Assembly (NCBI RefSeq): GCF_000315625.1
Contig: NW_005434624.1
Span: 514,477-578,476, forward strand
Reading direction: 5' to 3'
DNA: 64,000 nt
From: Guillardia theta CCMP2712
Taxonomy: Eukaryota > Protista > Cryptophyta
The first letter of the stretch is position 1, and every line of letters begins with the position of its first letter. The notes under the pieces are model-generated. The model saw nothing but the letters and a program-made list of their open reading frames with translations. It was not told where the DNA came from and did no database searches. Positions 5,901 to 42,567 of the stretch are shown one piece after another. The position numbers and the translations under genes were made by a program.

Positions 5901-6317
5901 CTATATCTTGCTGGTCACTAGACAGAGGTCGACTGGCTGAGCATTCGAGAAAAATATAACGGGATCCATATCAGTGGCATCCATGTACCACTCCAGCCAT
6001 GCCGTATCCCAGCAGACGGGAACTGGTGCTTCTCCTCTCCTCTGGCCATCAGTGCGCAATTCCTCCTTGTCCTTGTACTCGCGTTGTCTTGTCTGGGAGC
6101 TCGTGCCCTTGGTGTACGGCCAGCGCTGGATCCCGAGCCTCCGGCACGCAGCCTTGAAGCTCGTCAGGCACACCCCGAGCTGCTCGGCTGCCTCCTCTTG
6201 CCGGACGTGGAAGAGGCCCTGCAGAAGCTGAGCGTCGAGGGTGACCTCTCGCTGGAGGGTTGCTGGGGAGGTGTGTTTTCTTGGGCGGGGGACGATCTTG
6301 ACCTCATCGAGCTGCAT
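5901..6317 (-). CDS. RWP-RK domain transcription factor, copy 1 (138 aa, intronless)
   Basis: LQGLFHVRQEEAAEQLGVCLTSFKAACRRLGIQRWPY matches the RWP-RK domain; C-terminal WLEWYMDATDMDPV. Confidence 0.9.
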   Translation of the reverse strand: MQLDEVKIVPRPRKHTSPATLQREVTLDAQLLQGLFHVRQEEAAEQLGVCLTSFKAACRRLGIQRWPYTKGTSSQTRQREYKDKEELRTDGQRRGEAPVPVCWDTAWLEWYMDATDMDPVIFFSNAQPVDLCLVTSKI

Positions 6318-6990
6318 GTTGTATGCTGCAAGTGGATTGGGGTAGGAAGGGCAGAGATTGATTATCGGATGAAACAGGAAGTGAGGAATTCAAGGGAGGT
6401 GGGGGGCAGTTGTAGGGGGAAGAGCGGGGGAGCTCTCTGGAAAGAAGGGGAGCAAAACTGGAGGACTGTTTTGACGGTGTGTTATCAGCGAAAAGAAATA
6501 AAGAGCCTTTTATGAAGCGTTGAGAGTAGAGCATTTTCAGCCTTACAGGGCACGTCGCATCGGGTCATCAGTCATCAGAGTCGTCAGATCCGGGACGGGC
6601 CCAGTCGCAACTTTCCAAGTTCCGATTCACTGCACTGAGATCGCCGTGCGGCAGCGGAACTCAGATAGAACAGTGGTCCAATAAGGGTAAGAACCAGGGC
6701 TCGGACATTCCAAACATTCCAATCAAAGCTTGAAAGTCAGCGAGGCAGCTCTCATGCGCGGCATGCTTGGTTGGATCCTAGTAGCATCGGATTTCGTGTT
6801 ACAACAAATTTCAACATGTATGAGATTTAAAGAAGATACAACGAGCTGCGGATGCGGCAAAACTCTTAAGTCTACCAAAAGTTCTTAGGTTCCGGGAGCT
6901 CGTGAACAACTTGCCAGTTGCCTCGGAATCAGTGGCATCAAGGTAGTTGAATCGGCCGCAGAAGCACACCTGGCATACCCGAGTCTTTTT

Positions 6991-7641
6991 TTACATCAAG
7001 TAATCATACATGTCATTTCTAGCTTTGTGTAAAGGTGTCTGCAAGTAAGCATCATTGATGGCAAAGTTCCAAACCACTGGATCTGAGTCCGTCGCTTCCA
7101 TGTACCAAGCCAGCCACGCCGTGTCCCCGTGCCCCAGTACCGCCTCATCCTCCCTCCATCCCTCACCTCCTCCCTCTCTCACAGCAGCTTCTGGCAAGCT
7201 CTCCGCGTCTGCATGGTCATGTTCTCCGTGTCGTGGTGCTGAGACCTGGCCGAGCAACCAACCTGGTGTCCCTGCGCCTGAGCTCGATCTGTTGGCGTGA
7301 GACCAGTAGGCGCTGCTGTCTGCGAGTGGATCCGACGAGGCTGATGAAGGCGATGGCGATGATGCTGACTCTGAGCCTGTCTGAGACTCGCGGGATGGTA
7401 CGCCGGGTCTGCCGTTGCGCTGACTCATGCCCTTGGTGTACGGCCAGCGCTGGATCCCGAGCCTCCGGCACGCAGCCTTGAAGCTCGTCAGGCACACCCC
7501 GAGCTGCTCGGCTGCCTCCTCTTGCCGGACGTGGAAGAGGCCCTGCAGAAGCTGAGCGTCGAGGGTGACCTCTCGCTGGAGGGTTGCTGGGGAGGTGTGT
7601 TTTCTTGGGCGGGGGACGATCTTGACCTCATCGAGCTGCAT
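6991..7641 (-). CDS. RWP-RK domain transcription factor, copy 2 (intronless)
   Basis: Same RWP-RK domain as copy 1. Start placed at ATG 7641 (MQLDEV) by comparison with copies 1 and 3. C-terminal WLAWYMEATDSDPV. Confidence 0.9.
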   Translation of the reverse strand: MQLDEVKIVPRPRKHTSPATLQREVTLDAQLLQGLFHVRQEEAAEQLGVCLTSFKAACRRLGIQRWPYTKGMSQRNGRPGVPSRESQTGSESASSPSPSSASSDPLADSSAYWSHANRSSSGAGTPGWLLGQVSAPRHGEHDHADAESLPEAAVREGGGEGWREDEAVLGHGDTAWLAWYMEATDSDPVVWNFAINDAYLQTPLHKARNDMYDYLM

Positions 7642-8123
7642 GTTGAAGTTGGATAACGAGCGGAGTGGTGAGCAGTAGAAAATCAGTTGTAGTGATAGGG
7701 AATGCAGAAGCAAATCTTGAAGAGAGGTTGGAGAGAGACGTGGGTCTGCCGCGTGGAAGCAGGAACTTGGCAGCGCGGGATGAGCTTTCGATGGAGAAGT
7801 GCGGAAGAATTGGATTTTGGGTGTAGGGGAAAGTGAAACGTTTCAGTTTTGGCGGTCCGGATGCCACGAGGAGACGACAAGATGCAGAGCACAGTTTTTT
7901 GAGTACCCCTTCTTTTCTATGTAAATCAAGGGGTCATCAAGCGGTACGACATGTCAACCGGTAAGCTGACTTTTACTATTGGTAGATTTTCAGAATTGGA
8001 TGTAGTAAAACCCTCTTGCTTACAGTCATCTTGGCCGTGACGTCAATCTAGAGAATTCTGCAATGGAAGGTCATCACGGACTCCAGGATAGCGCCATGAG
8101 CTCGGATATGGGCCAGCAAACAC

Positions 8124-9080
8124 TTTACTCAAAGTTAAGTTAAAAATCAGTACGAGGCTAATCAGGAGATTGGCCATACGGCAAACCTTATCCGGCGCAT
8201 TGCTGTCCTCCAAACTTAACTGATACCTTCACTTAACTGCGCGCAGGCGCCATGCCAGGGATGTCGCCGTGGCCGCCGCCGAAGGAATGAGACGCATACC
8301 GGAACGCACCCGCGATGATGGCAGCGAAGGACAGGGAGGCCTTGAGCTGACGAAAGCTCCTGGACCGGATGCGTTTGCAAGTCGGATCACCTGAGACATC
8401 TTGCGAGGCCGAGAGACCATCCAGCGCTGCCGTTTCCTTGTTCACCGAGCGATCCGCCAGCCACCACAGAAAGAGCAACGCATCATCCTGCAAGAATCCA
8501 TCAGTGCTGGCGATGATGGGAAGGAAGGCCTTTGGCGGGACTTGCTGAGCATATGCATTACGATGCCCTCGGATCTTCCACTGTGCTGCTGCTTGCAGTT
8601 TTCTCCGAGCCTGGTCGGGGATCCCATCATTGTCAAAAACATGTGACATGCTGAAGTCCAGGATTAAGCCATACCATTGGACTCCAGTAGCCTGCAATTG
8701 CAGAAGTTCAAAATCCCCTGCGTGATGATCTTCAAGGCCATGTTGGGAAACGTTCTGCCTGGTGCCGGGAACGCATTGCACGTGGACGCGGCATCTAAAT
8801 CCTGAATCTTTGATGAGGGTACTGAGGACGGCATTGCATTTCTCATGCGCATCAGTGAATAACGGGCTGCGGTGCCTGCAGGTTGCCATGTGTGTGGTCC
8901 CCCCAGGGTGACAGAGAAGATCGTGGCATTTATCGCAGTGCGGCGAGAAGTCAATCGGCAGTCCATGAAGAAATTTGTCAGCGGCAGCCACCAAGCTGAT
9001 GGCCATAGTCAGTCACTTATCGGATTCCCGCGTATGCCACCGTTGGGTTTGGCATTCAGTGCAGCCCTGCCCGGCGGGTT
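8124..9080 (-). mobile_element. 5'-truncated non-LTR retrotransposon remnant with restriction-like endonuclease (CRE/R2-type) C-terminus and 3' UTR
   Basis: ORF 8233-9006 has a C-x2-C...H-x3-C knuckle (CDKC...HMATC), AHE at the RH[DN] position, GD...ILDFSMSH, QWKIRGH and FLPIIASTDG, in the order of RLE-clade elements. A GRAALNAKP segment upstream is out of frame. No RT domain remains. Confidence 0.7.
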
Positions 9081-9346
9081 GTGCGGAGGTTGGTTCTCTG
9101 ACTGTGCAACACTGCAGACAATGATCAAATAGTCGAAAGAACCTCGTCAACCCCAGAGTAAAAATCACCCGGGTCAGTGAGCTTCGGAAATCAACTAGTC
9201 CCGTGGAATGCATTCATCCGAGTTTCACCGTCACGGGGAGGCATCATTACAAAGCATTACTCGCCACATTCATTCAATCTGAACCGAGTCACAACCAATT
9301 ACTGCACAAAAGTAGATTCCTCTTTACCCCTAAAACAACGTGATAC

Positions 9347-10018
9347 TTATTTTGATGAAAACGCTCCATAAACACAAACACATCGGTGCTCCATTGGACC
9401 GCGAAAATAACATGAACGAAGTGGATCTTCAAGAATCGGGCCTTCGAATATAACTGGATCTGAGTCCGTCGCTTCCATGTACCAAGCCAGCCACGCCGTG
9501 TCCCCGTGCCCCAGTACCGCCTCATCCTCCCTCCATCCCTCACCTCCTCCCTCTCTCACAGCAGCTTCTGGCAAGCTCTCCGCGTCTGCATGGTCATGTT
9601 CTCCGTGTCGTGGTGCTGAGACCTGGCCGAGCAACCAACCTGGTGTCCCTGCGCCTGAGCTCGATCTGTTGGCGTGAGACCAGTAGGCGCTGCTGTCTGC
9701 GAGTGGATCCGACGAGGCTGATGAAGGCGATGGCGATGATGCTGACTCTGAGCCTGTCTGAGACTCGCGGGATGGTACGCCGGGTCTGCCGTTGCGCTGA
9801 CTCATGCCCTTGGTGTACGGCCAGCGCTGGATCCCGAGCCTCCGGCACGCAGCCTTGAAGCTCGTCAGGCACACCCCGAGCTGCTCGGCTGCCTCCTCTT
9901 GCCGGACGTGGAAGAGGCCCTGCAGAAGCTGAGCGTCGAGGGTGACCTCTCGCTGGAGGGTTGCTGGGGAGGTGTGTTTTCTTGGGCGGGGGACGATCTT
10001 GACCTCATCGAGCTGCAT
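9347..10018 (-). CDS. RWP-RK domain transcription factor, copy 3 (223 aa, intronless)
   Basis: Identical to copy 2 from the start codon to ...DSDPV, then a different tail. Confidence 0.9.
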   Translation of the reverse strand: MQLDEVKIVPRPRKHTSPATLQREVTLDAQLLQGLFHVRQEEAAEQLGVCLTSFKAACRRLGIQRWPYTKGMSQRNGRPGVPSRESQTGSESASSPSPSSASSDPLADSSAYWSHANRSSSGAGTPGWLLGQVSAPRHGEHDHADAESLPEAAVREGGGEGWREDEAVLGHGDTAWLAWYMEATDSDPVIFEGPILEDPLRSCYFRGPMEHRCVCVYGAFSSK

Positions 10019-10389
10019 GTTGTTATCTGTGGATGTACGTGATGCGTTCTGTCTGTGAGATTGGATGTAGGATTGGTTAAGTCGAATCAGGGGAAAGATA
10101 TTGGGGAAACAATCAATCGATGAAGTGGGGAAAGAGGAAAGAATGGGACCTTAACATAGGGGGCTGATAACAAGGGAAGGAAAAACCGCATCGTTCCAGA
10201 AAAATACTTTTGGTCCGGATGCCACTCTGACTCAGCAGATAGACAGGTCCCACTCACCCACCTAACTCAGTACCAGCTGTGCAACGAGAAATAGGTGGGT
10301 AGTCCAAGGGCCGACGGAATTGAGGGGTATTTTACCACAGGGTGGAAGACCTTTACTCCTGGCATCCAGAGCTTTCTCTGACTGGGTAA

Positions 10390-11105
10390 CTTACAGTAAC
10401 TTACCTCCGGTGATACCGTGACGTTCAATCAGTGCCAGATTCCGCTGTGCGCGCCCGGCCAGGCTAGCCTCGGAGCGCGGTGGCGCTCTGACGGCCGAAG
10501 TTTACTCAAAGTTAAGTTAAAGATCTCAGTTCGAGAACAAGCCTCAGTGTCAGTGAATCCGAGGCCGGCGAGTCGGAGACTCTCAGCCTGGCCCGGTGAG
10601 TCGACTACCGTGAGTCCGGCGGCGGCGAGGCCCTGAGGCTCCGGGGCGGCCTGGGAGGCTTGACCCGGGGCAGCCTGCTCTGTCGCACAGCCTGCCACTG
10701 CCACTGCTGCCGCCGGCGGCCCCCGGGCCCACTGCCAGCGCTGGACCGTACGGTACCCCGTTTGAAAATTCCCGGAGTCCGGCGCCGCGGGCCGGGCCCC
10801 GCGCGGCACCACTGGCATCACCCGCCGGGCCCGGGCGCCGCCCGCGGCCCGGCCGGCCGCCGGGCAGCGCGCCGCCGCACTGAGTGCCGCACGCGGCGCT
10901 GGCGCCAGTGCGGCATGTGATGTACGGTGCAACTGAGTGACCCGGCGCCGCGGCGCCGCGCGCCACCAACTGAGGCCCGAGACGCACTCAGCGGCCGCTG
11001 ATACCAGAATCGCGGCCCCGGGGCGAGCGGCTGAGTGCTGAGCCGCCGCCGCGGCCGGCGGCCGGGTAGATGATGCCCCCGGGCCCTGCCGATGCCCGGC
11101 CCGGC
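10390..11105. other. GC-rich intergenic island with dispersed-element copy at 10501-10540 (minus)
   Basis: TTTACTCAAAGTTAAGTTAAAGATCTCAGTTCGAGAACAA inside a CCGGGCCCGG-rich tract. Confidence 0.65.
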
Positions 11106-11332
11106 TAAGAGTGGGGATGATGTCCCAATAATCGGCATGGTCGGATTGAAGTGAACGAGCGGGCGAGGGGTAAGAGCGTGTGCTGGAGATGCTGAAGGCT
11201 GAGGAGGAGGATCATGGGTGAGTGCGTTGATACTCTTGACCTTGTCTATCCAGCACGAAGTGAGTACAAGTAAGCAAGAACTGTCGAAATCCAATCATGC
11301 ATGAGAGATTGGCAGGTGATAGGAAGCGCACC

Positions 11333-12963
11333 ATGGAGTGGAAGGATGGAATTGCAGGGGCCATTTCTGGTACTCGAATGTCTGACAACATTGAATAGTA
11401 TTCAGTGATTTGTTCGTACAGGAGTTGCGACTCGATGTTGTGTAGCTCCTTTGGATGTCATCAAAATCCGCTTGCAGCTACAGGTGGGACGCTATCTCAG
11501 CTGGGACCTCCTTGATTGACTTGTGCTTGTGATAGACCAATTGCCAAGGCTCTAGCAGAGATTATCGAGGGTTTCTAGGGACATTTCAGGTGATTTCGAT
11601 ACAGTAAAAGCCTCGAATGCTTACAGAGTGTTGGGACAGACGATAGTTCGCAGGGAAGGAGTAAGTCAATTGCGAGACATCCGGGCGGGATGTTCACATG
11701 TGTGCAAGGTTGTTGCACTGTGGAAGGGCAATCTCGCTGCAGAGTTCCTGTGGGGAGGGTACATGGGCACACAGTTTCTGGCCTATAGAAGCTTACAGGT
11801 CAGTAGGGAGCGGCTTTATTCTAGGGCATGTGAAGAAGTTGAGTCAGAATGCTATTCATCATCATACTTTCATGCATGGAGGAGGGAGAAACAATGAACA
11901 TGCATCTCAGGCACAAGATACGAGGCTGAATGATGGCAGCAAGGTATTCAGTGTTTCTGGTTCATTCAGTCTGCGCTGATGTTCCTGTCATTGCCCCTGA
12001 CAAGGTTTTGCGTGATTTGATCTGCGGTGGACTTGCTGGAGGGTTTGCGACCATGACAACGTTACTTTGACTGAAGCTGTGCACACTGTCTTACTCTGTA
12101 ATTAGGTACCCTTTTGATCTCGTGAGAACTCGGCTTGCAGCCCAGACAGAACCCAAGGCACATGCCTTGATGCGTTATGATTGTGCTAAGCTTTAGCAGA
12201 TTTACCATGGCGTCTTGGATGCATTTTATCGCATTTTAATCAGTGAGCGAATGCGAGGATTTTACCGGGGTAATACCTTAGCCTTGCCACTTCTGTAGTA
12301 CTTTGTGACGTGTTGATGTCAGGATTGGCTCCTAGTCTTATTCAAGTCATGCCATACATGGGGATTCAAGTGCTTCCTATCCCTAAACGTTGATTTCCTT
12401 TTCTCACTGTTGCCGGCTAGTTCTCCATCTACGAGGCTCTCAAGCGTTTCATCTCCACTCAAACCAAGGAAGGATCGCAAGGTGACACTCATGGGAGGCT
12501 CATTGGTGTCGCGAAGTTAATTTCTACTAGGATGGAAGGAGAGCATGTTCTGCGGGTATAATGCGTCGGATGTTGGCCAGCCAATGGACGCCTCACACCA
12601 CACTTGCAACAGATGCGTCGCCGGGAGCATCTCGAAAATTTCTACCCTCCCTCTGGACGTTACGAAGAAACGGATGCAGGCAACAGGATCATCCCTCTCA
12701 CGATAGACTCAATTGTCACAGGTCATGGGCACGACCATGCTTGCAGCTTCACAGGGTCGAAAGATATCTTCTATGCGAGAGGTTGTACGAGGTATCTTGC
12801 GCGACGAAGGATGGCAAGGGTTCTTCCGTGGTGGTCTCCCCAGGTCCTCGTGCTTGGGCTGATGTAAAGCACGTGACATGATCTTGTAAACAGCGTGATG
12901 AAAACAGCGCTATCATCGGGGTTGTCATTCGCGATCTACGAGCTCATGCTCAAGATCCTTTGA
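11333..12963 (+). CDS. Mitochondrial carrier (SLC25) protein, thiamine pyrophosphate carrier-like, multi-exon
   Basis: Three P-x-D-x-x-[KR]-x-R motifs read across introns (APLDVIKIRLQ, YPFDLVRTRLA, LPLDVTKKRMQ), plus LWKGNLAAEFLWGGY, GFYRG and GFFRG; stop at 12961-12963. Confidence 0.85.
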
Positions 12964-13087
12964 CAAAGTTGAGGCAAGTCATCACTATAAATCCTACAGT
13001 GCTCAGAGACAACCAGGACTGCTTGTGAGCAGACGCATTTGATTAACATTAGAATCACACAAGAACGATCCCATCATGACATTCTTC

Positions 13088-13466
13088 TTAGTAAACACCG
13101 TAGCCATGCACATTGTACTGCAAACCAAGTCAGCCTTGGCAACGAAACACGAAAGTCTACGCACATTTGGCCAGCTAGACCAGTCCACAGGAGTCCATGT
13201 CGTGTGAGCCTGTGGGTTAAAGGAGCCAGAAGAAGGGTCGGACTCATAGGGATGGATGGTCACGGCTGGATTTCCTTCGCCCTGCAGGTAGGCGCCCCAG
13301 GGCTCGTCAGCCTTGTACCAGTTGCCGCCCATTGTGGTATCGAACCTGGAGGAGGAAGTCAGCAGGAGAAGACGAGTTCCACATCATGCGCTTACATGGA
13401 GTAGGGATCGTTCCTGCCTCCGTTGGGAGATGCGTACAGCATCGCGCCTCTGAAAAACGGGAGCAT
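13088..13466 (-). CDS. Small G/P/W/Y-rich hypothetical protein, probably 3 exons
   Basis: MLPFFRGAMLYASPNGGRNDPYS, then ...MGGNWYKADEPWGAYLQGEGNP...VDWSSWPN, then YNVHGYGVY-stop, joined by short GT-AG introns. Confidence 0.5.
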
Positions 13467-13544
13467 GATGGCTCTTCGTTCCGCCGAGCGAGTCCACACG
13501 CATCAAATGTATCCTTGGAGATATCAATGTTCTGCGGCCTTGAG

Positions 13545-13990
13545 CCAGACGGCCGTCCGACCGGGTGCCGGGCCCGGCCAGATCCGCCGGTGCCACTTTT
13601 TAACTTAACTTTGAGTAAATCAGCCTTGTGACTCCGTACCCCGGTGGGCCCGGGACTACTCCCGCAGGCGGATGGAATGTAGGGTAGGGTCCTAGAACTT
13701 TGGCAGCCGTTGGAATCGGATGCGACATGCCATGATGGCGAGCGCTGAGTGTGGCACTGAAAGGATGAGGCTCAGCGGCCGCTACTTGTCGGACTCTCGG
13801 AGGCTCAGTTGATGATCGCTGCCAGTGACCCCGATACTAATCCGATCTAGAGTCTGTCTTTGCCTTGTCATAGTACGTGCGGCTTGCGGTTAGCTGACTC
13901 TTAGAACTGATCACCGTCGGTGACGGAAGATCGGAAGATGATGATCATTGTGTGAAAGTCAGGCCAGTGTGAGCCTTGAGTGCCGTGAAG
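13545..13990. other. GC-rich intergenic island with truncated dispersed-element copy at 13597-13619 (plus)
   Basis: TTTTTAACTTAACTTTGAGTAAA between CCGGGCCCGG-type palindromes. Confidence 0.6.
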
Positions 13991-14092
13991 ACGCCCCACC
14001 GTGCAGTCCATCAAGTTCCTGGCAACCGAAACATTCTGATTTGTTCTGATTGCTTCTGATTCAGTTGTTCAACTTCGGAAGTAGTTGCGGCG

Positions 14093-15072: not shown

Positions 15073-15156
15073 ATATCAATGAATGGACTGGGACGGGACA
15101 CTGCGATCCTCTGATCACTGAGGGCATGCTAACAATGTACATGAACATCGCAGTGA

Positions 15157-19120: not shown

Positions 19121-19122
19121 CA

Positions 19123-23405: not shown

Positions 23406-26331
<2,926 letters not shown>

Positions 26332-26958: not shown

Positions 26959-27483
26959 GTGACAATGGCCCGCAACGAATCCACACTAGGGCAGGGAGCA
27001 AGAATCGCGTCGTCAACAGCTATAGTTGAGAAAGTTACGGTCTCACCAAGAGTTCGCCCAGGAGATCTGAAAAAACAGCCATTGGAGGTCCATCTTGACC
27101 TCAATGTGCTCGAGCCCTTGTACGGTCTTCGGCAAGAGGAGGCGGCTGAAAGACTTGGCATTTGCCTTACAAGTTTGAAGGCTGCCTGCAGGAAACTCGG
27201 CTTGAGACGATGGCCATACAAGAAAGACAAATTATGCATCTCACAGACAGCCCAATCTAACTCTGTCAGCACTGGATCCAATCAATGTTTTCCAGAACTT
27301 GGTCAAGTAGACAAGGCTCCTCCTCAGATCCCGCCCGACACCAACTTGAGCCTTCAAGGCGATGGCGCAGATGAGGATGACGGTGACAAGCCAATCAGTT
27401 CTGGATGGATAGGATGGTATCTTAATTCGAACGATCAAGATCCAATCATCTATGACAGCGCATTTCAATCTTCAGGAATTTGA
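26959..27483 (+). CDS. RWP-RK domain transcription factor, copy 4 (intronless; probable ATG at 26965)
   Basis: LEPLYGLRQEEAAERLGICLTSLKAACRKLGLRRWPYKK; C-terminal WIGWYLNSNDQDPII. Confidence 0.9.
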   Translation: MTMARNESTLGQGARIASSTAIVEKVTVSPRVRPGDLKKQPLEVHLDLNVLEPLYGLRQEEAAERLGICLTSLKAACRKLGLRRWPYKKDKLCISQTAQSNSVSTGSNQCFPELGQVDKAPPQIPPDTNLSLQGDGADEDDGDKPISSGWIGWYLNSNDQDPIIYDSAFQSSGI

Positions 27484-29094: not shown

Positions 29095-29658
29095 ATGGAA
29101 CCATCTGTGATTGTTTCCCCACGCGTTCGGGGCGCATCATCGTCATCAGCAGCCGATGTGAAGCTGGACCTTCAAACCCTTCAACCCCTCTTCAGCATGA
29201 AGCAAGAGGTCGCTGCGGAAAGACTGGGCATATGCCTGACAAGCTTAAAATCTGCCTGCCGAAAGCTCGGAATCCGGCGATGGCCTTACTCAAGGAAGGG
29301 ATCGATCCCCAAAAAGGCTCCGAACTACATCAGATCAGATCCTCCTCCTGCGGTGCCGGATTTGACTATCGGTACAAGTGCTCGCATGCCCATCCAAGAG
29401 GGCCCGTCGCATACAGTATCATGCCCGACTTTACACGACGCACCGAACAAAGTTGATCCGGAGCATACTCCGATCGTGCAACGGGATTACGAAATCTTTG
29501 TAAAAAAACCAAACTCCCCCACACATCAGACCGATTTCTTCGTGGGATGCTTTGCTGTCAAGCGCGAGAAAGAAGCAACCACTATTTGTAAGGAGTGGAT
29601 CGACTGGTATATCAACAGCGATGATAGCGATCCTGTATTCACTCACAAGAGCCTATGA
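29095..29658 (+). CDS. RWP-RK domain transcription factor, copy 5 (187 aa, intronless)
   Basis: LQPLFSMKQEVAAERLGICLTSLKSACRKLGIRRWPYSRK; C-terminal WIDWYINSDDSDPVF. Confidence 0.9.
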   Translation: MEPSVIVSPRVRGASSSSAADVKLDLQTLQPLFSMKQEVAAERLGICLTSLKSACRKLGIRRWPYSRKGSIPKKAPNYIRSDPPPAVPDLTIGTSARMPIQEGPSHTVSCPTLHDAPNKVDPEHTPIVQRDYEIFVKKPNSPTHQTDFFVGCFAVKREKEATTICKEWIDWYINSDDSDPVFTHKSL

Positions 29659-29733
29659 CAATTATTGGGAATTAATATCTTTCAAACTAATAAATCCAAG
29701 TTACATGTTACAAAATGGGTTGCATTGAAGACA

Positions 29734-30767
29734 TCATCGACTACCCAGTTCCCACACTTTAGGTCCGAGAACCTTGGCAGCCAGGTCCTTGTCCATTGGC
29801 ACTCCGACACCCCTGATATTCTATGGTCAAGCCAACAGTGCTAGACAACAAGAGTCATAGAGAGAGTAAGGGAGATGCAAAGGACAGATACAAGTCTGCG
29901 ATGACGACAAGATCGTTGTTCACCTGAAGAGACACCTCGCGTAATGGTATTGGCACACCTGTGCGCAAATCAGAAGATCATCTACTTGATTCCTTACACC
30001 CACATCGCATTTTAGTTCTTTCCATCCTTTCTTGTAGATCTCGACAGCCCGCGACGCATCCTTTGCAACACCATCGCCTTCCTGCAAAGCAATCAGGAAA
30101 AGGATCAAACATGGTGCCGCGAAAGGTTCAATCATGTTAAAAAAAAAAGGACAGTCATGGCTAGGATCAATACCACTGGCAAGCAACACACACCTCATAG
30201 ATCAATCCTAGATTACTTGTTGCCGCTTTGTGCCCATTCAGCGACGCTTTCATGTACATCTCTGCTGCCCTCTCCATATCCTTCTTGACACCTCGACCCC
30301 TTGCATAACAGACAGCAAGGTTGTACTGCCCCTCCGGCATCTTTAGTTGTGCAGCTCTGAGGAAGAGTTTTGCCGCCATCTCCTGATCCTGTTGTACTCC
30401 TTCCCCTTTGGCATAACAATACCCGAGCGCACAGATGGCCTTGTCGTGCCCTTGCTTCGCAGCTTCCTGATACCACAGCGCAGCGGAGGCAACGTCTACA
30501 TCCACCCCTCTGCCTTGCTCGTAGCACCTTCCAAGGTCATACTGCGCATCAGCATCGCCATCTGCTGCCCCCCTCCTCAGCCAAAAGATCCCTTCTTCCG
30601 AGTCTGACTGGACCCCATCCCCTCGCAGGAGGATCTGACCAACCTGGCCCCTCTTTTGACCCAACTCCTTCCTGAGAGCCTTGCTGTACTCCAGAGGAGC
30701 AGACCACGAGCCATTGCTTGCAAACGACATGTGAAAGGAGCCTGTCTTGCCGTCTCCTCTCGACCAT
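29734..30767 (-). CDS. Sel1-like repeat protein, multi-exon
   Basis: Repeated AQYDLGRCYEQGRGV / AICALGYCYAKGEGV / GQYNLAVCYARGRGV units. Confidence 0.88.
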
Positions 30768-31146
30768 GAACGGCTAGCAACACATCATCTTCCCGGACGT
30801 CGCCAACGACGCTTCCTTTCCGTTGGTTGCCCTGCTGCCTTACAAAACCATGCGATCTTTTGGGTACGTTTTGCTGCCCCCTTTATTTGCTAAAATAATC
30901 TCAGTGAGGCAGGCTTGATAATGTTGACACCAGGACACACAACTAACAATTTGAATGTCTCTAAAAGGGGTGGGGTGGAAATGAACTACCACCCTGTTGA
31001 ATAAAGGGGGTTAACAGTTGCTCTAGTATATGACCGGTACTTTTGCCTTCCAATAACAGTCAGACGCATGGGTGCTTTATAGCATGTTGCTAATGAACAG
31101 GGTACTGTTAGTCAGTATGGTAGGGTAGTGATTCTGACTCTTCAGC

Positions 31147-32860: not shown

Positions 32861-33179
32861 TGAAAGCACGCGCTTGTTATTGGGAAGGAAACTTCTCATT
32901 GGGCGTGGAAATTATTTCTTGTGCGATAGTTATTCCCCTGGTTTTCTCTCGCCATGCCTATCCCTTTCATATCCCGATCTCTCTCTTTTAATCATGTACA
33001 TGTTTTTCCATGAAGAAGCAATCTCATTGCAGATGAATACCACATTAGATGTTCTTCATTCCCTTGTCAATTTAGAAAGACCTCAGCTGGGAGATTCCGA
33101 CTCCTTTGCAAAGGGGCTGAAACGAGACTGAGCGAGGCAGAGGAGCAACGAGGAAGGGGGAAGCGGGGAAGGAGCTCCA

Positions 33180-35790
33180 AGAGCTGGAGGAGGTAGTGGT
33201 GGAGGCGAGAGAGGGGAACGACCAAGACGAGGACGAGGACGAGGACGAGGAAGACGACAAGGTTCATTACCTTGGCAGCTTGCCGGAGGAAGGCTCTTGA
33301 CTGGACATGCTCCTCGGAGGTACATCAGACGGACTGCACCCACATGAGCACCTCGAACAGGTAAAGCGGAGACTCTCACCGCCTCCTCCCCTGAAAGTTG
33401 TTCATCCTGACGAGCAGCAAGAAAGGATTCATGTCACCAGAACATCGCTTTCCCACCTTTCTCCTCCTCCCTTGCCTCCCTCACTCCCTCAACCATCCTG
33501 TTCGCCTCCTTCCCTTCTCACCTCGCTGCGCTGTTGAGAGAGATCCTCTGGATGGTCGACTGCGAAGTCTTCTTGCTCGAGGTCTCCAGCATTTGCGGAG
33601 GAGAGGAGGAAGCAGCGTCGTCTTGCTCCATGGGGCTGGTGGGAAAGTAGGATGAGCCGGAAGCAGGAGTTCTGCTCCCTGACTTGGGACTGTTGTTGAC
33701 GATCAGATTGTTTGCTGCGATCTGAATGTTCATCCCTGCTCCTCCTCTCCCCACATCCTGAGACATGCGAGCGTCCTCCTCCTCCTCCGGGCCCCCATGG
33801 CCGTTGAGAGTGGCCACGTGCCATGCAAGGTGCGGCAGTAGCATGCCGGCGAAGACAGTCATGAATCCCCACAGCTGGAGGAGAGCGAGAGGAAGGATGC
33901 AAAGTCGAGTTAGCACGAGGGAGGAGGAGGGAGGAGGAGGGAGGAGGAGGGAGGAGGAGGGAGGAGGAGGGAGGAGGAGGAAATCCAAGAGGAGGCGATG
34001 AAGGGATGGAGGGGCAGCGAGGAGAAGAAAGGAATGAAGAAAAGCGGGGGAGATAGGGGTGCTGAGGGACGGAGGGAGACTGGGAGGGAGGTGAAAGGAG
34101 CTTCAGGTGCAGGGAGCAACTCTGCCCTGGATCACCTTGCTTGCGAGGGAGGAGGCGGCAGGGTCTTCTCTCTGACTCATTTCGGCGCAATGGTAGACGG
34201 AGAGAGCGAGGAGGAGGCATGCCGGCTGCAATGGCTTCACTCCCTCCTCACAGGCTCGTCCTCCTCCTCACCGACTCGCTCCAGACGACAAAGTTCTGCG
34301 ATCCCAAGATGCCAGACACCATGGAGCAGCTGCCGGCGAGCAGAGCAAAGGAGCCCTTCCTGCCCGCTGCTCAGCCCTTCCACCTTGCTCCTTCCTCTGA
34401 CCTCAACATCTTGATGCCCAGAGACACGGCCAGGGAGACGAGGAGGATGGGAGGGAGGAGGATCGCCTGCAAGCGCGGTTGAGTGGAGGAGAGAGGGAGG
34501 ATGGAAGTGAAGGACAACAGGGGAGCAGGGAGACAGGAGGAGCGAGGTAGAAGGAGGAAGGAAACTTGCCGTGCTCGGAGGGAAAGGATGCAGCTTGTAG
34601 TAGACGAGACCGGCAGACCTGGCCAGACGCTTCTCAGCGTCTTTGCCCCCGTCCTAAGCTACGTGAACCTCCAGGTGGAGTCGAGGATGGTGGAAGCGCC
34701 GAACGCCACGTGCCTGGAAGGCAAGTAAGGAGGAGGGAGGAAGGAGGGGGCAGCACCAGAAGATGGAGTAGACGCTGAGACCTCCAATAAGCATGGCGGC
34801 TGACTGCAGGATCCACTGGGAGCAGCATGGGAAAGAGTGAGGGAGCCTACAGCCAAGGGGAACGAACTCACAGACGCTGCGAACATCCGCAAGCCCTGGG
34901 CCTCAGCCACTGAAGCGACTGAGGATGCTAGCATGGAGCAGACCTGCAGCAGAGAGATTAGGGTGAAGGAGACTATGAGAAAGCGGAGACTATGATGAGG
35001 ACGAAGACAAATGGGTGGAGGACAAGGAGAAAGTGAAATGAGGTCGAAGAGAGGGAGGGAGGAGGTTCAGGGAAGGAGGAAGAGCGCATGTTGAGCCACA
35101 CCAGAGGGGAGATGAAGAAACGAGGGAGTGAGAGTAGAGAGAAGAGCGGGTATCCCAGAACATGCAGCCGGTTGCCCATCTGAAGGAAAGGGGAGTCAGG
35201 AGAGGACAGAAGCCCCAGGGTCGATAGCAGCCCACCACTTGGCCGAACGCCAGGATGAGGCAGTTGTACGCCAGCCCTGCGACAACTCTGCGTTAGGAAC
35301 AAGACGGGAACAATGATGGGCTGAGAGATTGTAAACTTCCAACATGACAGGAGCAAATCACGAGGCTCTGGGAGCCCAGCAGCCCCCAAGGAAAAGATTG
35401 CAGCATGCAACCTTTGAAGACTAGCTTCAGGCGCCAGTCAGCACTCCTGGTGGCGAAGTAGTAGGAGATGGCGAGGATAGAGCCGAAGTGGACGGCAGCG
35501 ATGCTCAATCCCTGTCCCTCGTCCTCCTTGGATCGAATGAGCAACTGAAGTTGATGGTCAGGGAAATGCATAGTCGCTGCACCTGCACAAGATGGAACAG
35601 CTCGCACCTTCCTCGCATGTTCCCTCGTTGAGCCTCCCCGTATGCTCATGCGCAGTGATGGCACTCTCCCCCCGCTCAACAGCTTCGAGCAGAGCCCGAT
35701 CCTTCCGGGTCCGCTCACATGCAGATCGACGAGGCAACAGCACAGGCTCAAAATCCTCGCCGCCATGAGTGAGAAAAGGAGAGTTTTCAT
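33180..35790 (-). CDS. Hypothetical membrane protein, multi-exon, boundaries uncertain
   Basis: Hydrophobic N-terminus MKTLLFSLMAARILSLCCC; TM-like segments (IAAVHFGSILAISYYF; LWGFMTVFAGMLLPHLAW); introns pyrimidine-rich on the minus strand. Confidence 0.35.
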
Positions 35791-36315
35791 GGGGGAGTGG
35801 AGATGGCAGAGGTTGTCAGCTCTTCATCATCTTAACCGCACTGAATATTGCATCTTTCTCTGACGTGACAAGCTGAGACAAAACTCATTGAGGTATGACA
35901 GGTAATTTCATATTGAGCTCCCCTCAGTTCTCCCCCCACACACAGAATGCTACTGTCTTCCAAGTTCCAACCCCGCCAGCCAAACTTGAGCTGAGAACTT
36001 CTAGTCAGCAAGAGTGATGGTATAGCAGAAGCTCTTAAAATTCAAGAAGCATCCACACGAATTGTTTCAACACAAGCATTCGCACAACTAGAGCTCCACA
36101 AGGATATGCTCCTGTTTCAGACTTGAGAGCTGCTGCCCACCATCTCCAGGTCTATGATTCTCTCACCTCCTCTTCTCTTACTCGCTCCCACTTATTATAA
36201 ACTCACTTGCGAGCTCGGGCCCTTTCACTTCCCCTTCCCCTTGTCTGTCCCCTCTCCTTCTCCCACGCCCTGTCAGTCTGGTACTATGTCGCTCTCCCCC
36301 CCTTACCCTCCCTCC

Positions 36316-36318
<3 letters not shown>

Positions 36319-36357
<39 letters not shown>
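36319..36357. repeat. (CT)n microsatellite
   Basis: Direct reading. Confidence 0.9.
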
Positions 36358-36359
<2 letters not shown>

Positions 36360-36489
36360 TCCTCCTCCTCCCCCCCCCCGCCCCCCCTCCTTTCTCTCTA
36401 TCTCCCTCTCTTTCTCTCTCCTTCTCTCTCCCTCTCTCTTCCTTTCTCTTCTCGTCGGCCCCTCCCTCGCTCCTGTGACCTAACTCAGC

Positions 36490-36795
36490 ATTCCAGAGCT
36501 AGGCAATTTCATTTTTTCGAATTCGATTTTTTCCCCGCCACCGGGTCGGGGCCCGTCGGCCGCGGGGCCGGTCACAGGCTGGGCCCGGCCCGGCCCGGCT
36601 CCGACACTGGCAAGCTGCCGCCGGGCGGCCATTGGGTAGCGGCCTGGAGTACGGTCCGGCTCGCCGTCACGGTTCACTTTGTTCTCTTCTCGCCGTTTGG
36701 CTTGGCACGGCGGCGACAGTCACGGTGATGGCTGCCTGGTCAAGCCGCTCCTGATTGTCCTCGTACTGATTTTTAAGGCTTAACTTTGAGTAAAG
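36490..36795. other. GC-rich intergenic island ending in a near-full dispersed-element copy (36737-36794, plus)
   Basis: TGGTCAAGCCGCTCCTGATTGTCCTCGTACTGATTTTTAAGGCTTAACTTTGAGTAAA. Confidence 0.75.
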
Positions 36796-37588
36796 ATCAA
36801 TCTTGCCGTTTGTGCCCCCCGGGGTTCTGAGGTAGGGGTGGAAAGCAGTGATAGAGGGGGTGCTGTTGAGTTCGGTAGGATAACAGAGGAAGAGCAGAGG
36901 AAACTCTGCGGCAAAGGGACTCAGGGCAAGGGCAGGGAGGGGAGCGGACAGGGAGAGGAGAGAAGCTTACGAGCAGCGACGTACAATGAAAGGCAAGAGC
37001 ATGAGAGAGATAGAAGAGGCTGCATATGAGGTAAGAGAGCGTGAAAGCGAGGAGAGTGAAGAGAAGGTTGACTTTCCTGTTCCCGTGTTCTCTTGCTCCT
37101 CTCCTCCTCTCTCCCACCTCCTCTGTCTCTCTGTCTCCCTGTCCCTCTGTCTCTCTGTCTCCCTGTCTCTCTGTCTCTCTGTCTCTCTGCCTCTCTGCCT
37201 CTCTGTCTCTGTCTCTCCTTATCCTTCTTCTCATGTAATCCCTCCCCTCCTCCGTTCCCCTCGGCGTTTTCAGCTTCCACACCTCTTTGCAACTCCCCAC
37301 AGCTCCACTTTGCTGCAAGTGGTCATGTATGCTGTGCAGTCTCCTTTAAGAAGAGACGTAGAGGAGATTTGATCCGACGTAGAAGAGAGACAAGGATGCG
37401 ATAAGAGGGAGAACGAGGTAAGTCTGCGAGGCCTCGCTGCTGATCCCTGCTACAGGTCCCAGGCTCTCTGCAAAGTCATCCCAACGGACTTCGAGCTCAA
37501 GGACGGGGGGCGGTAGACGGTCGGGTTGAGAGGAGAGCTCGAAGGGAAGAGGTCCTGGTGCTAGAGCTGGGGGGAATACGGGAGGAGG

Positions 37589-39948
37589 ATGAATCAGAAT
37601 CAGATCTCGAATGACGAGCTGAAGGAGAGGGAGGAGGATGCAAGGATAAGGAAGGGGCTGATAAAAGCAATCAACAGAGGAGATGAGGTCAAAGTGAGAG
37701 GACTGGCCGTGAGTGCAGGACCAGAGCGACTGAAGCAGATGCATAGCGTAGGCGTGGCTCAAGGCACCACGATAGTCAGCGGGTGTAGGGACAAAACATT
37801 GAGGGTGTGGGACCTGGAGGAGATGAAGGAGAAGGCTTGTCTCCAAGGTCACATATGGGACGTAACCAGCGTGGCGATCAGCAGAGATGGGAAGACGGCA
37901 GTCAGCGCGAGTTGGGACAACACTTTGATTGTGTGGGACCTGGAGAAGATGAACGAGAAGGCTTGTCTCCAAGGTCACGAATCGTGGGTAAACAGTGTGG
38001 CGATCAGCGAGGACGGGAGGACGGCAGTCAGCGCGAGTAACGACTCGTCAGTGATTGTGTGGGACCTGGAAGAGATGAAGGAGAAGGCTTGTCTCTATGA
38101 CGTTGAATGTGGCTGTGTGCTGAGCGTGGCGATCAGCGAGGACGGGAAGACGGCAGTCAGTGCGTGTACTGATGAGATTTTGAGGGTGTGGGACCTGGAG
38201 GAGATGAAGGAGAAGGCTTATCTCCAAGGTGATGAATGGGAAACGCGAAGCGTGGTGATCAGCAGAGATGGGAAGACGGCAGTCAGCGGGGGCGCAAACA
38301 AGAAACTGATTGTGTGGGACCTGGAGGAGATGAAGGAGAAGGCTTATCTCCAAGGTCACGAATCATGTGTAAACAGCGTGGCGATCAGCGAGGACGGGAA
38401 GACTGCAGTCAGCGGGAGCGGGGACAAGACAGTGAGGGTGTGGGACCTGGAGGAGATGAAGGAGAAGGCTTGTTTCCAAGGTCAAAGTAGCGCTGTTACG
38501 AGTGTGTCTTGGAGATCTGTCAAGGGGTCGATGGGCTCAGCACTGCACGTGGCAGCGGCGCGAGGGGTCTGGCCTATCTGTGAGAGGCTGCTGGAAGTAG
38601 GCGGGGGAGAGCTCGGCGAGCTGCGAGACTCGATGGGACGAACAGCGGCGAAGGTAGCGCGAGAGAGACAGGACGAGGAGCTGGCGAGCAAGATAGAGGA
38701 CTGGATGCGGCGGCTATGGAGTGGGGAGCTTTTGATAGAGGCACTGCAAGACAAAGTCAAGGCAAAGCACGAGGCAATGGAGAGAGAGGAGAGGGAACTG
38801 AAGGAGCACAAGCAGAAGCAGCAGACGGAGCGAGAAGGGAAGGAAAGGCAGGAGAGAGAGTCCGAGCAATGCAAGCAGCATGAAGTGTTTTTTGAGGTTC
38901 TGTTTGTGATCGTATGAGATTCGATGTGACAGGTGGATTTTTCTGTCTGCAGGTAGGAAGCACTCGATCGGTTGCCTACAACAGCTTCGTCGTCAGCCGT
39001 CAGATTGGCTCAAGCTCCTTCAAGCTCGTCTACAAGGCTCGATGGCAGCAGCTGCAGGGCAGCAGCGCAGACGTGGCCATCCTGCGACTCCGAGGCAGCG
39101 GACTCACCGAGAAGAGGGACGAGCTCGAGCAGAAGGCGAAGACCTTCCAGCAGCTAGGCCGTCACCCAAACCTCCTCCGCCTCCTCGCCATCACCGTCGA
39201 GCCAAGCTCTGGCGACTTCTGCCTGGTGACTGAGTTGGCTTCCAAGGGTTCTCTTGATGAGATCTTGTACAAATTTGCCGTGGAGGAGGAGACGTTGGGT
39301 CTACTGGTGCAGCTGCAGGTGGTGAGACAGATCTGTGACGGGATGGTGCAGCTCTCGTTGCACGAGGTCGTACACCGGGGCCTGGGCGCGAGGAACGTGC
39401 TGGTCTTCAGTCTGGATGCGCAGGACCACCTTGGTGTCAGTGTCAAGATAGCGGACTACGCAGGATGGACTGCTCAGCCGATGCGATGGATGGCGCCAGA
39501 GAGCATCGAGAGAAGACAGTTCTCCCAGAAGAGCGACGTGTGGGCTTTCGGGCTGACCATGTGGGAGGTCTGGACTTACGGCCAAATCCCTTATGGGTCA
39601 ACTATCACAGACGATGCGCTTGTAGGGTCGAAGGTGGTAGACGGAGAGCGACCTGCAGCACCTGCGTCATGCCCTGCAGTAGTGTATACAATCATGCAGG
39701 AGTGCTGGAAGAAGGAGGAGGAGGAGCGGCCAAGCTTCAGCGAATTACAGCGAAAGCTCCAGGAGCGATACGACGAGGCCGTGCAAGGGCGCGGGCAGCA
39801 ATGCGTCATCTGCATGGATCACAGCGCTGAATGGGCGCTGATCCCCTGCGGTCACAAGTGTCTCTGCGAGTCTTGCAAGGAAGGAGCGACAGCCAGGAAG
39901 TGTCCGATGTGTCGCTCGAGCCCCACGAGCATCTACAAGATTTACTGA
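37589..39948 (+). CDS. Ankyrin / WD40-repeat / ankyrin / coiled-coil / tyrosine-kinase-like pseudokinase / RING protein (~767 aa; exons 37589-38896 and 38953-39948)
   Basis: Six VWDLEEMKEKA-type WD40 units; SALHVAAARG and MGRTAAKVA ankyrin motifs; kinase fold with PMRWMAPES and SDVWAFG; C3HC4 RING CVICMD...PCGHKCLCESC...CPMCR. A phase-0 GT-AG intron at 38897-38952 joins the two ORFs. Confidence 0.85.
37765..38510 (+). repeat. Tandem 126-bp coding repeats (WD40 units)
   Basis: TGGGACCTGGA at 37808, 37934, 38060, 38189, 38315 and 38441 (spacing 126,126,129,126,126). Confidence 0.92.
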
Positions 39949-40421
39949 CACAGTCAGCGGACTGGCTGATGCCGTAACGTACCCGGAGCCTGAGCCCCGG
40001 CTGTAAAGCTAGCTCTTCTCCCGCCAGGCCCGTCTCTCGTTACACATCATGGCATGCACCGCCGCATGTAGGAGTAGGGAACTGCACTGTACTGCTTGCT
40101 CGGAGCAGTGCGCTCCTGTACGGTACTGTTCTGTACTGACATGAATACACGGAGATGACATTACTGTTAAACATCATCACGGTTGGTCTTCGAGTTGTCT
40201 TGCAGGCTCCCCTCCTCTCTCCCATCCCCTCTGTCTCTCTATCTCTCAAGTAAGCTCTGTGTCTTAAGTATGGAACTCAAGTATGATTGCCTGCTACTAC
40301 TCGTTCACTGCTTTTCATCCCTTGTCCTATATCTACCTCAAACCCTCCCTTGCTTCCACCACTTCCTTTTATGCCATGTACAGGAAAGGGTCGCTGGCAA
40401 ACTTGTTAATCATCGACGGAG

Positions 40422-40580
40422 ATCTCCTCCAGGTCCCACAGCAGTCAGCGCGAGTAAGGATGCGACAGTGAGGGTGTGGGACCTGGAGGAGATGAAGGAG
40501 AAGGCTTATCTCCAAGGTCACAGTAGCGCTGTTACAAGTGCGCCTTGGAGATCTGTCAAGGGGTCGATGGGCTCAGTGCT
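40422..40580 (+). pseudogene. Detached fragment of the WD40 gene (last WD unit plus start of ankyrin), preceded by an inverted 19-bp piece
   Basis: 40441-40577 aligns with ~38405-38541 (AVSASKDATVRVWDLEEMKEKAYLQGHSSAVTS); 40422-40440 is the reverse complement of 40475-40493. Confidence 0.8.
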
Positions 40581-40599
40581 ACTGGCCGACCAGTAACCA

Positions 40600-41075
40600 T
40601 CTAAGTTAATCAGTCTAGCCGGCACTGCGGCAAGCTCCACTGTACCGCAGCCACGGTGTCGCCGGTCGGACTCTGGGAGGCTGAGTCACAGCAGGTTCAG
40701 TTGGCCGTACAAGTTGTTCCATGTCAGGCCGGGCTGCTGGGGTTCGTGGATCATCCGATCCCCCGGCCGGTCAGCCGCTGATACCGTGGCTCGGACTGCC
40801 TGAAGATGCACTTTGAGTAAACTGACTGATGATGCCATTCGGCCCGAGCCTCTGACGGGGCGGCGGCAGCGGCACGACGGTGGCCGGCGGCATACCAGCA
40901 TGATGCCGTGACGGCCTTCCGCGGGGTGCTGCTACACCAGTTTGAACAGCGGTGATCAGACTGCCTTGTCCTCTCCCAGTGACTCATGCCAGCAGCTCGA
41001 TCCGAGTCACGCCGCCCACACTGGGCCGGCCATGCGCCTGGCGGTCATCGAGCTTCAGCCGTAGCCAGGGGCCGG
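40600..41075. other. GC-rich intergenic island with a 12-nt terminal remnant of the dispersed element (40810-40821)
   Basis: ACTTTGAGTAAA within a GAGTC/CAGTG/CCGG-rich tract. Confidence 0.5.
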
Positions 41076-41076
41076 T

Positions 41077-41615
41077 TGTAGGGATTGACGATCCTGATGA
41101 TATACTTTGACTCCATGAACTTGAACCAACTTGCTAACCGGTGGCAAGCAAGCAACAGGAACCTCAACACAACCGCGCTCGCTGAACGTATAGAAAGTTA
41201 GGATAGATTTAGGATCCAACCGACAGGATAAATAAGCTATTTAACTGAAGTTTCCGCAACCGCTTTTAAGTAACTCCTATCATTACACTCCCGAGCACAT
41301 CATCACCTGAGAAACATCTCGATGAACTTCGCTGCATTAGGAATTAGAATTAGTCACATTAAACTCACTCATCAATTGACGAAGAAACGGCTTTTTCAAT
41401 TCACGGAAGGACAACCAAGAATCAGACGCAGGATTGTCATACCCTTTCCATCTGATCAAGTATTGCACACGACGACCTTTCCCACGTCGTGCTAAGATTT
41501 GATCCACTTCATAAAATTCACCATCTGAATGCACAATAGGATCAGGTGGTGCAACTTTATTGTTGAAACACTCGTCACGAAGATGATACGGTCGAAGCTT
41601 CGAAACGTTGAACAC
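41077..41615 (-). mobile_element. Ty3/Gypsy chromovirus 3' remnant: integrase tail with chromodomain plus probable 3' LTR (41077-41287)
   Basis: VFNVSKLRPY...PPDP...YEVDQILARR...QYLIRWKGY...DSWL. About 50 nt after the stop, a short purine run GGGAG precedes TGTAATGAT...ATCCCTACA (TG..CA termini, 7/9 inverted match). AT-richer than host genes. Confidence 0.75.
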
Positions 41616-41767
41616 CAAGAAACGTAGCGTCATCTTTCCGAGCAGCCCCCTTCTGGGCCGGGCAGCCTCCTACTGGGCGGCCACCAGACAGCTGTCACGG
41701 TCAGCAGCCTCCTCCAGGCTGATCTGGTCCTGGCAACTCGCATCCATCACTGAATGCAAGCCAAGAC

Positions 41768-42567
41768 TCACGGGGACTCAGGAAACTTGCTGCATGGGCC
41801 CAGTGACCGATCGACGGAAAGATCATCATCCTCGCAAGTGATGAACCAATCCAGCCAACCCTGATCGATGCTCGGCTCAGTTGCCCCCTGCGCTCTTGCC
41901 CCTAGGCTGAGCATTTCGTTTCCTCCTGACGTGCCGGTGGGTGCATCGGCCAAGGGTAAATGTATGCCAACGGGCTGCACCTTGCTGACGTCATTGCTCG
42001 CTGGTGTGCGTGTGCTGTTCTGATCACGCCTGTTGGATGAAGCAGTCTCAGATGGTTGGCCATCAAAGAAGGCTCCTTGCGGGCCCTCGCTTGGTATTAG
42101 CAGCCGATCCATATCAATTCCAAGGCCAATGCTCGAGTTGTGCCAATCGTCCTTATCCTGCGGATCAGACTCTGTAGGTTGGGCCAGCGTAACTGGCCCT
42201 CCCCCGTGCCCCCTGCTTGACGCTTCGTCGATGAAGCCGGCAGAAGCACTGCCCAGCTGCTGCGCATCAGGTTCAAGGTCGTCTGTCCCCGTGTCATTCT
42301 GAGACTTCCTTCCTCGAGAGTAAGGCCATCGGAAGATCCCAAGTTTTCGGCACGCGGATTTGAGGCTTGACAGTGAGATGCCCTAGCAAGAGGAGGTGAG
42401 AAGAGAAATCGTAGATCAGAGCTATCAGAGAACATTACCAGTTGATCCGCGGCTTCTTGCTGGCTCAGGTGGATCAAGGACTGAATGAGTGCCGGATCCA
42501 ACGACACTTCCTGCAGCGCCCCGCTGTCGCTCTTCTTTCTTGATTTTACCTTGACGGTGGAGAGCAT
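41768..42567 (-). CDS. RWP-RK domain transcription factor, copy 6 (one intron, ~42385-42437)
   Basis: IQSLIHLSQQEAADQL/GISLSSLKSACRKLGIFRWPYSR; C-terminal WLDWFITCEDDDL. Confidence 0.85.

Follow-up and report, generated by a model that had tools for sequence, protein, structure and literature searches.

Six small RWP-RK genes at the locus

The window analysed here is a stretch of 64,000 nucleotides from the cryptophyte Guillardia theta CCMP2712 (contig NW_005434624.1, positions 514,477 to 578,476 of the forward strand). It holds six intact small RWP-RK genes, named g1 to g6, which encode proteins of 138-247 aa. Each protein carries the RWP-RK domain in its N-terminal part and, in its C-terminal tail, the motif W-[LI]-x-W-[YF]-x4-D-x-D. 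Motif positions are counted from the first Trp. The genes and their elements are as follows.

5901-6317, (-): g1, 138 aa, single exon, from open reading frame (ORF) and translation; V-K-I-V-P-R at 6285-6302 (-), RWPYTK at 6108-6125 (-)
5958-6011, (-): tail motif of g1, positions -4 to +14, WDTAWLEWYMDATDMDPV
6991-7641, (-): g2, 216 aa; motif at 7075-7128, RWPYTK at 7432-7449
9347-10018, (-): g3, 223 aa; motif at 9452-9505, RWPYTK at 9809-9826
26965-27483, (+): g4, 172 aa; V-T-V-S-P-R at 27034-27051, RWPYKK at 27208-27225, motif at 27394-27447
29095-29658, (+): g5, 187 aa; V-I-V-S-P-R at 29107-29124, RWPYSR at 29278-29295, motif at 29584-29637
42439-42567, (-): g6 exon 1, 43 aa; V-K-V-K-S-R at 42538-42555 and the first half of the RWP-RK domain
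42383-42438, (-): g6 intron, 56 nt, GT..AG, phase 0, inside the domain, directly 5' of G-I-S-L-S-S-L-K
41768-42382, (-): g6 exon 2, 204 aa; RWPYSR at 42314-42331, motif at 41816-41869

The start of g2 was placed at the ATG at 7641, rather than at a TTG further upstream. The domain family PF02042 was detected by Pfam in g1-g5 with 58-61 bits (61.4 bits for g1), against a cut-off of 29.3. For g6, the two exons were searched singly, both with Pfam and against P0192, a transcript-derived protein of the sister alga Hanusia phi. Exon 2 matched PF02042 with 27.2 bits over model positions 27-45, the second half of the model, and exon 1 gave the first half. Exon 1 aligned to P0192 residues 5-45 and exon 2 began at residue 46. 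The exon junction is thus colinear with residues 45/46, which supports the splice. An intron at this position was found in most of the paralogues retrieved, while g1-g5 are intronless.

The signature of the six domains reads RWPY[TKS][KR]. R-W-P is present in all six, and the Arg at position 5 of the classical RWPxRK is replaced.

The original prediction had described six genes of ~140-250 aa with a common W-[LI]-x-W-[YF]-x4-D-x-D, and its description held in detail. In the six-frame translation, the motif was present in 6/6, with sequences exactly as quoted there. The segment V-x-[IV]-x-[PS]-R, proposed to precede the domain, was likewise found ahead of it in all six. As predicted, g2 and g3 have one linker in common, and the other four linkers are distinct and mutually unalignable. 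The GAF and PB1 domains of NLP-type proteins, expected to be absent, were not found in the six genes by a Pfam scan at E<=1, and the other matches in that scan lay far below their cut-offs.

Form of the motif and its frequency in the genome

The looser pattern W[LIVM]xW[YF] had exactly six matches in the six-frame translation of the window, and all six also fitted the strict pattern W[LIVM]xW[YF]x4[DE]x[DE]. Mononucleotide shuffles of the window (200 trials) averaged 0.38 loose matches and never produced a strict one, and the reversed sequence gave 0. In the 87-Mb genome, a DNA pattern for the strict motif had 49 matches, versus 2 for the reversed control. The motif is therefore not a product of chance. 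All strict-pattern matches that were retrieved and looked real were located 100-500 nt 3' of an RWP-RK domain, on the same strand and usually in the same frame.

Alignment of the tails gave the extended consensus P-[LI]-[DE]-x-x-W-[IL]-x-W-[YF]-[MVLI]-x-[ACS]-x-[DE]-x-[DE]-[PE]-[VIL]. The tail sets A1 and A3 (the latter comprising 43 tails) were built from copies chosen by patterns that demanded both Trp and [YF]; position 5 was [YF] in 43/43 tails. Positions -4, -3, -2, 6 and 8 were conserved although the selection patterns did not demand them. The motif lies 13-48 residues from the C-terminus (median 21) and 15-174 residues from the domain (median 80). A 30-residue segment around the motif was 25% acidic, 4% basic and 14% aromatic, and several paralogues had extra W-I-x-x-F-like clusters in the acidic linker. 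In one copy (L038:7123-7695, at ~469.1-469.7 kb of G000:C17), a poly-Glu run directly follows the motif (W-I-A-W-Y-M-Q-E-E-E...) and ends in an assembly gap.

Of 571 candidates in the genome, at least 150 were scored RWP-RK matches. The DNA pattern C-R-x-Φ-G-Φ-x-R-W-P-[YF], with 217 genome matches versus 1 in the control, yielded a list of 214 domain places. At thresholds of E<=1, E<0.01 and E<0.001, the A3 profile marked 136, 95 and 80 places in the genome, respectively. Of the 95 places, 72 lay 100-600 nt 3' of an RWP-RK domain of the same strand, as determined by hand, and one was a tail-only fragment. Among these 73 places, the tail was never joined to a different domain. The remaining 22 fell outside this check, including an array of eight at C38:474-486 kb. 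Seen from the domain, a tail was located downstream of ~85 of the 214 domain-pattern places (~40%, hand count). At loci reached via the domain alone, the tail was found in the RWPY / T-S-L-K-x-A-C-R subtype and in none of the RWPFRK, RWPHRK and KWPHRQ subtypes. What the tail marks is therefore a large subfamily, with at least about 80 genes, and not the whole RWP-RK family.

In the array at G000:C38:474335-486246, the eight tail-profile matches are spaced ~1.3-3.3 kb apart on one strand, and the domain DNA pattern has no match there. Either these genes have a variant of the domain, or their tail is joined to something else.

Copying within the family and conservation of the motif

The similarity of the tails could have arisen merely by recent duplication or by homogenisation through gene conversion, with no function of the tail itself. 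Copying does occur in this family. In g2 and g3, the 570 nt that begin at -4 and end with the last motif codon show no difference; past them the two genes diverge, and their flanks are unrelated on both sides. Between g1 and g2/g3, 221/222 nt are identical in a block that starts 5 nt ahead of the ATG and ends at codon 73, and beyond it the genes are unalignable. This block has the signature of gene conversion, which would have been recent. The limits of the copied or converted blocks of g1-g3 thus coincide almost exactly with coding features.

The block common to g1 and g2 ends well before the motif. In the motif codons, 40/54 nt are identical between these two genes, and 14/18 residues are kept. 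Seven of the 11 degenerate conserved codons differ synonymously, so that the motif is near-saturated at synonymous sites. Orthologues in Hanusia phi gave a similar picture. Identity between g4 and its orthologue P0005 was 83% in the domain, 22% in the linker and 61% in the motif. For g5 and its orthologue P0002 it was 57% overall, with 83% in the domain, 42% in the linker and 67% in the motif. The motif was thus kept next to linkers that are only 22-42% identical, and it was also kept across ~40 diverged paralogue tails. The Hanusia orthologues and the g1/g2 codon comparison contradict recent copying as the explanation, which we regard as extremely improbable. Judged by these sequence comparisons, the motif is shown to be real, old, tied to RWP-RK genes and, by its pattern of substitutions, under purifying selection.

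Distribution beyond Guillardia

With a threshold of E<=0.001, word searches and a full HMMER search of 1.84 billion representatives recovered 6405 RWP-RK proteins, of which 51 reached E<=1e-30. Within the best 150, W-x-x-W-[YF] was present after the domain in 39 of the 120 new representatives. Ten strict-motif representatives were looked up; seven were from Hanusia phi, and an eighth clusters with a Hanusia protein. All strict-motif matches with names were from Hanusia or Guillardia. The other relatives with names were from Goniomonas avonlea, without the tail, and from Geminigera cryophila, a protein with both GAF and RWP-RK domains. For P0017, ESM Atlas returned generic RWP-RK clusters only. 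One cryptophyte paper mentions the family, counting 56 RWP-RK genes in Rhodomonas salina.

Environmental relatives combine an N-terminal V-x-[LIV]-[FY]-P-R-R-K and an RWPY domain with a variant tail, [DE]-x-D-L-G-W-L-V-x-[CS]-E-D. In many cases D-P-V comes after the variant, and a second motif, F-E-M-A-W-x-E-R, follows. The hhalign register, which equates the Trp at position 4 of the Guillardia motif with the single Trp of the variant, was weak (probability 8%, pairwise E 0.004). Four environmental proteins (P0080-P0082 and P0090) have a degenerate G-I-H-S-W-[AV]-[QH]-V-R instead of RWPYxR. They bear both D-D-L-A-Y-L-V and a C-terminal E-W-L-Q-W-Y-E-K-S, and since both motifs occur together, the variant need not be the counterpart of the Guillardia motif.

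These distributions support a subfamily that would be lineage-specific to cryptophytes, with an outer limit that is not fixed, given the environmental relatives with the variant tail. The original prediction had likewise proposed a lineage-specific subfamily, and this is borne out by the large paralogue set in G. theta, the recurrence in Hanusia phi and the cryptophyte origin of all relatives with names. It had also asked for a profile search of the proteome and of other eukaryotes, and had named a lack of conservation across the wider paralogue set as a refutation. The profile found its 80 places at E<0.001, with the motif kept in Hanusia phi, and ~40% of the 214 RWP[YF]-type domain copies proved to carry the tail. 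That the motif had no name stood as well: Pfam was blank in the tails, and the literature searched held no description of it.

Predicted structure of the tail

An AlphaFold2 model of g1, based on 50 aligned sequences, had a mean predicted local distance difference test score (pLDDT) of 77. It showed strands at residues 5-8 (the V-K-I-V segment) and 25-28, and three domain helices with pLDDT 86-95. The linker had a pLDDT of 53-58, followed by a tail helix at residues 106-112, where the blocks reached pLDDT 81-89. When the 44-residue tail of g1 was folded alone, with 43 aligned tails, the helix A-W-L-E-W-Y-M-D had a pLDDT of 91 and the next block 87. The equal confidence of the lone tail indicates an autonomous helix of the conditionally folding kind, and the full-length model is therefore no evidence for docking onto the domain. 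The motif is accordingly modelled as a two-turn amphipathic helix by itself. On a helical wheel, positions -3, 1, 2, 4, 5, 6 and 8 would form a wide hydrophobic face, and positions 3, 7 and 10 a polar one.

A complex prediction of g1 residues 1-80 with residues 96-138 scored 0.00 and so has no bearing on binding either way. A sequence search of the PDB brought up no RWP-RK structure. Its only match, the ferulic acid esterase 7xrt with K-W-I-R-W-Y-I-S-C-G-D-D-D (E 0.03), was taken as chance. Foldseek comparison of the g1 model with the PDB gave only weak helix-turn-helix matches over ~35-40 residues (Fis, TyrR, NtrC4, NarL and GcrA), which left the tail uncovered.

Transcripts, gene models and neighbouring sequence

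The Hanusia phi orthologues were derived from a transcriptome, and the family is therefore expressed in that species. For G. theta, ~6% of one raw RNA run was read. Few reads were found over the 3' parts of g2 (at 6699-7169) and g3 (at 9211-9681), with none on g1 and no splice joints. RNA-run contigs contained almost none of the sequence words of g6.

Named G. theta proteins of the family include GUITHDRAFT_111146, 111147, 111150 and 111246. The annotation calls the genes no more than hypothetical or RWP-RK domain-containing. In GUITHDRAFT_111246 (P0049, 134 aa), a short intron is removed from g2/g3, by which the frame is shifted and the motif lost. The conservation of the motif in the unspliced g2/g3 frame argues against this model. 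It is probably a mis-prediction, the reads over g2/g3 being too few to decide.

Between g2 and g3, the interval 8112-9053 was covered by contigs of three presumed RNA runs to a depth of up to ~15,800, with many mismatches and loose ends, which suggests a multi-copy expressed element. An ORF of 257 aa at 8233-9006 (-) had no Pfam match.

The first and second gene groups are separated by one further feature.

23488-23587, strand not applicable: assembly gap, 13.4 kb from g3 and 3.4 kb from g4, inside none of the six genes

The gap is surrounded by low-complexity DNA with homopolymer runs. If the sequence were not continuous across it, only the distance given between gene groups 1 and 2 would change. 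Directly past the gap, at 23588-23740, long C and G homopolymer runs resemble poor-quality sequence. Gene g5 is adjoined by a 187-aa ORF of Sel1 repeats at 30167-30730 (-), which matched with 112 bits.

Possible function of the motif

For the tail, we favour a putative acidic-aromatic activation or cofactor-docking motif, to which we give about an even chance. The composition of the tail, its C-terminal anchoring, the disordered and variable linker and the predicted autonomous helix are consistent with activation or partner binding. The layout agrees with what is reported for functional activation domains, which are free of basic residues and abound in acidic and aromatic ones; Trp and Asp are their strongest features, and aromatic residues work best near the C-terminus (PMC8426559). 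In the proposed mechanism, the short V-x-[IV]-x-P-R strand and the RWP-RK helix-turn-helix would form an N-terminal DNA-binding module. A disordered acidic linker, very variable in length and sequence, would lead to a conserved effector motif placed near the C-terminus rather than at a fixed distance from the domain. Binding into the hydrophobic groove of a coactivator, or of a partner specific to the lineage, may then induce folding of the motif, while the homogenised DNA-binding cassette would carry it to the target promoters. Both Trp residues occur in every selected copy and in the orthologues, in a fixed W-x-x-W-[YF], and this points to one defined pocket rather than to a fuzzy "acid blob".

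Several points weigh against an activation or cofactor-docking motif of this sort. Generic acidic activation domains need no fixed residues, and such a domain alone leaves the strict W-x-x-W spacing unexplained. The invariance of the Trp residues in A1 and A3 is partly circular, as the selection patterns required both, and natural variants exist (W-I-D-L-Y in P0012, F-I-E-W-Y in P0069 and W-I-S-A-F in P0086). Expression of g1-g3 was very low in the one raw RNA run. The Pfam models of TAZ and KIX had no match in the six-frame translated genome; as they were silent in the control genomes too, this is uninformative.

The tail could also serve as the dedicated docking peptide of one partner found only in cryptophytes, which would be a coactivator or else a factor for retention or export under signal control. 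We hold this to be possible, though doubtful. If there were a single partner, about a hundred small factors with homogenised DNA-binding cassettes would feed one effector hub. Diversity would then come from the variable linkers and the promoters, which would make this a novel arrangement of regulation in the lineage's largest expansion of transcription factors.

In another reading, the tail helix docks onto an RWP-RK domain. Within one protein, this could inhibit the factor or complete its fold; between family members, it could bring about dimerisation in place of the NLP PB1. The strict co-occurrence of the motif with one domain subtype and its high pLDDT in the full-length model would fit. 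However, the tail alone was modelled just as confidently (pLDDT 91), which excludes contact with the domain as the source of that confidence. The linker also ranges from 15 to 174 residues, and in ~60% of the RWP[YF] domain copies no tail could be detected (hand count). Furthermore, cassette and tail evolve independently, as in g1/g2, where the cassette was converted and the tails are still diverged. Docking onto the domain is therefore unlikely.

Somewhat less likely still is a CRM1-type nuclear export signal that controls the nuclear retention of the factors. Nitrate is known to control the nuclear retention of plant NLP7, and the class 1a export signal has the form Φ-x3-Φ-x2-Φ-x-Φ, with mainly aliphatic Φ. 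The arrangement [LI](-3)-x3-W(1)-x2-W(4)-x-Φ(6) matches this spacing, in an acidic context and a disordered tail with a predicted helix. Export signals favour Leu, Ile, Val, Met and Phe, however, and rarely tolerate Trp, whereas two of the four Φ positions (Φ2 and Φ3) are Trp in nearly all copies, which is atypical. In addition, the [YF] at position 5, present in every one of the 43 tails, has no role in the class 1a consensus.

Acidic-aromatic peptides serve many adaptors, and W-x-x-W is the consensus for C-mannosylation, which the motif fits. We nevertheless regard another short linear motif (a degron, an Atg8-interacting motif or an AP-2 W-x-x-F) or a C-mannosylation site as very unlikely, because a DNA-binding domain is present and the N-terminus is not signal peptide-like. 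C-mannosylation was rejected on grounds of cell compartment. The Atg8-interacting pattern [WFY]-x-x-[LIV] was rejected since the residue three after the first Trp is Trp, and the AP-2 pattern W-x-x-[FW]-x-[DE] since position 6 is hydrophobic.

Comparison with known RWP-RK factors and activation domains

RWP-RK factors control nitrogen responses and the gamete and haploid-diploid programme in plants and green algae, and little is known of how minimal RWP-RK members exert their effect on transcription. In cryptophytes such factors number in the hundreds, with at least 214 RWP[YF]-type domain copies in the 87-Mb genome of G. theta. The tail offers a sequence handle by which this expansion can be sorted into subfamilies. 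It is also a concrete element to mutate (W to A) and a bait for the partner. As Pfam has no model for the tail and no description of the motif was found in the literature searched, the tail motif appears to be new, the RWP-RK domain itself being known.

Close parallels in architecture are RKD1-5 of Arabidopsis, MpRKD of Marchantia and MID of Chlamydomonas. Like the six genes, these proteins are small, have RWP-RK as their sole Pfam domain and are presumed to be sequence-specific transcription factors. The six genes differ from them by an N-terminal domain with a V-x-Φ-x-P-R strand before it and an acidic linker and W-x-x-W tail after it, by the signature RWPY[TKS][KR] and by the hundreds of copies in arrays in G. 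theta. No such tail on RKD or MID was described in the literature searched. NIN/NLP proteins and NIT2 of Chlamydomonas belong to the same PF02042 domain family. In NLPs, the N-terminal region is GAF-like and responds to nitrate, and a PB1 domain lies at the C-terminus (PMC7399023); both are missing in the six genes, with their 138-247 aa.

The RWP-RK groups of oomycetes are likewise non-plant, but of a different lineage from the G. theta genes. PMC7399023 reports group-specific extra motifs in them, as determined by MEME, and members that vary at signature positions 1 and 6; cryptophytes do not occur in that paper. The environmental proteins with V-H-L-F-P-R-R-K ... D-L-G-W-L-V-x-C-E-D (P0016-P0065 and others) have the same strand as the six genes, the RWPY domain and the acidic linker. 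Their variant tail aligns weakly in register with positions 2-12 of the Guillardia tail, with Asp in place of the first Trp, and F-E-M-A-W-x-E-R follows 15-20 residues further on.

Among activation domains, the central one of yeast Gcn4 (W-x-x-L-F), the AHA motif of plant heat-shock factors and VP16 have the same cluster of aromatic and hydrophobic residues in an acidic, basic-poor, disordered and helix-prone context. These motifs are degenerate, whereas the G. theta tail, as a putative activator, keeps two Trp at fixed spacing and [YF] across tens of paralogues. If it is an activation motif with fixed residues, it would provide a natural case for the debate on "fuzzy" versus "specific" activation domains.

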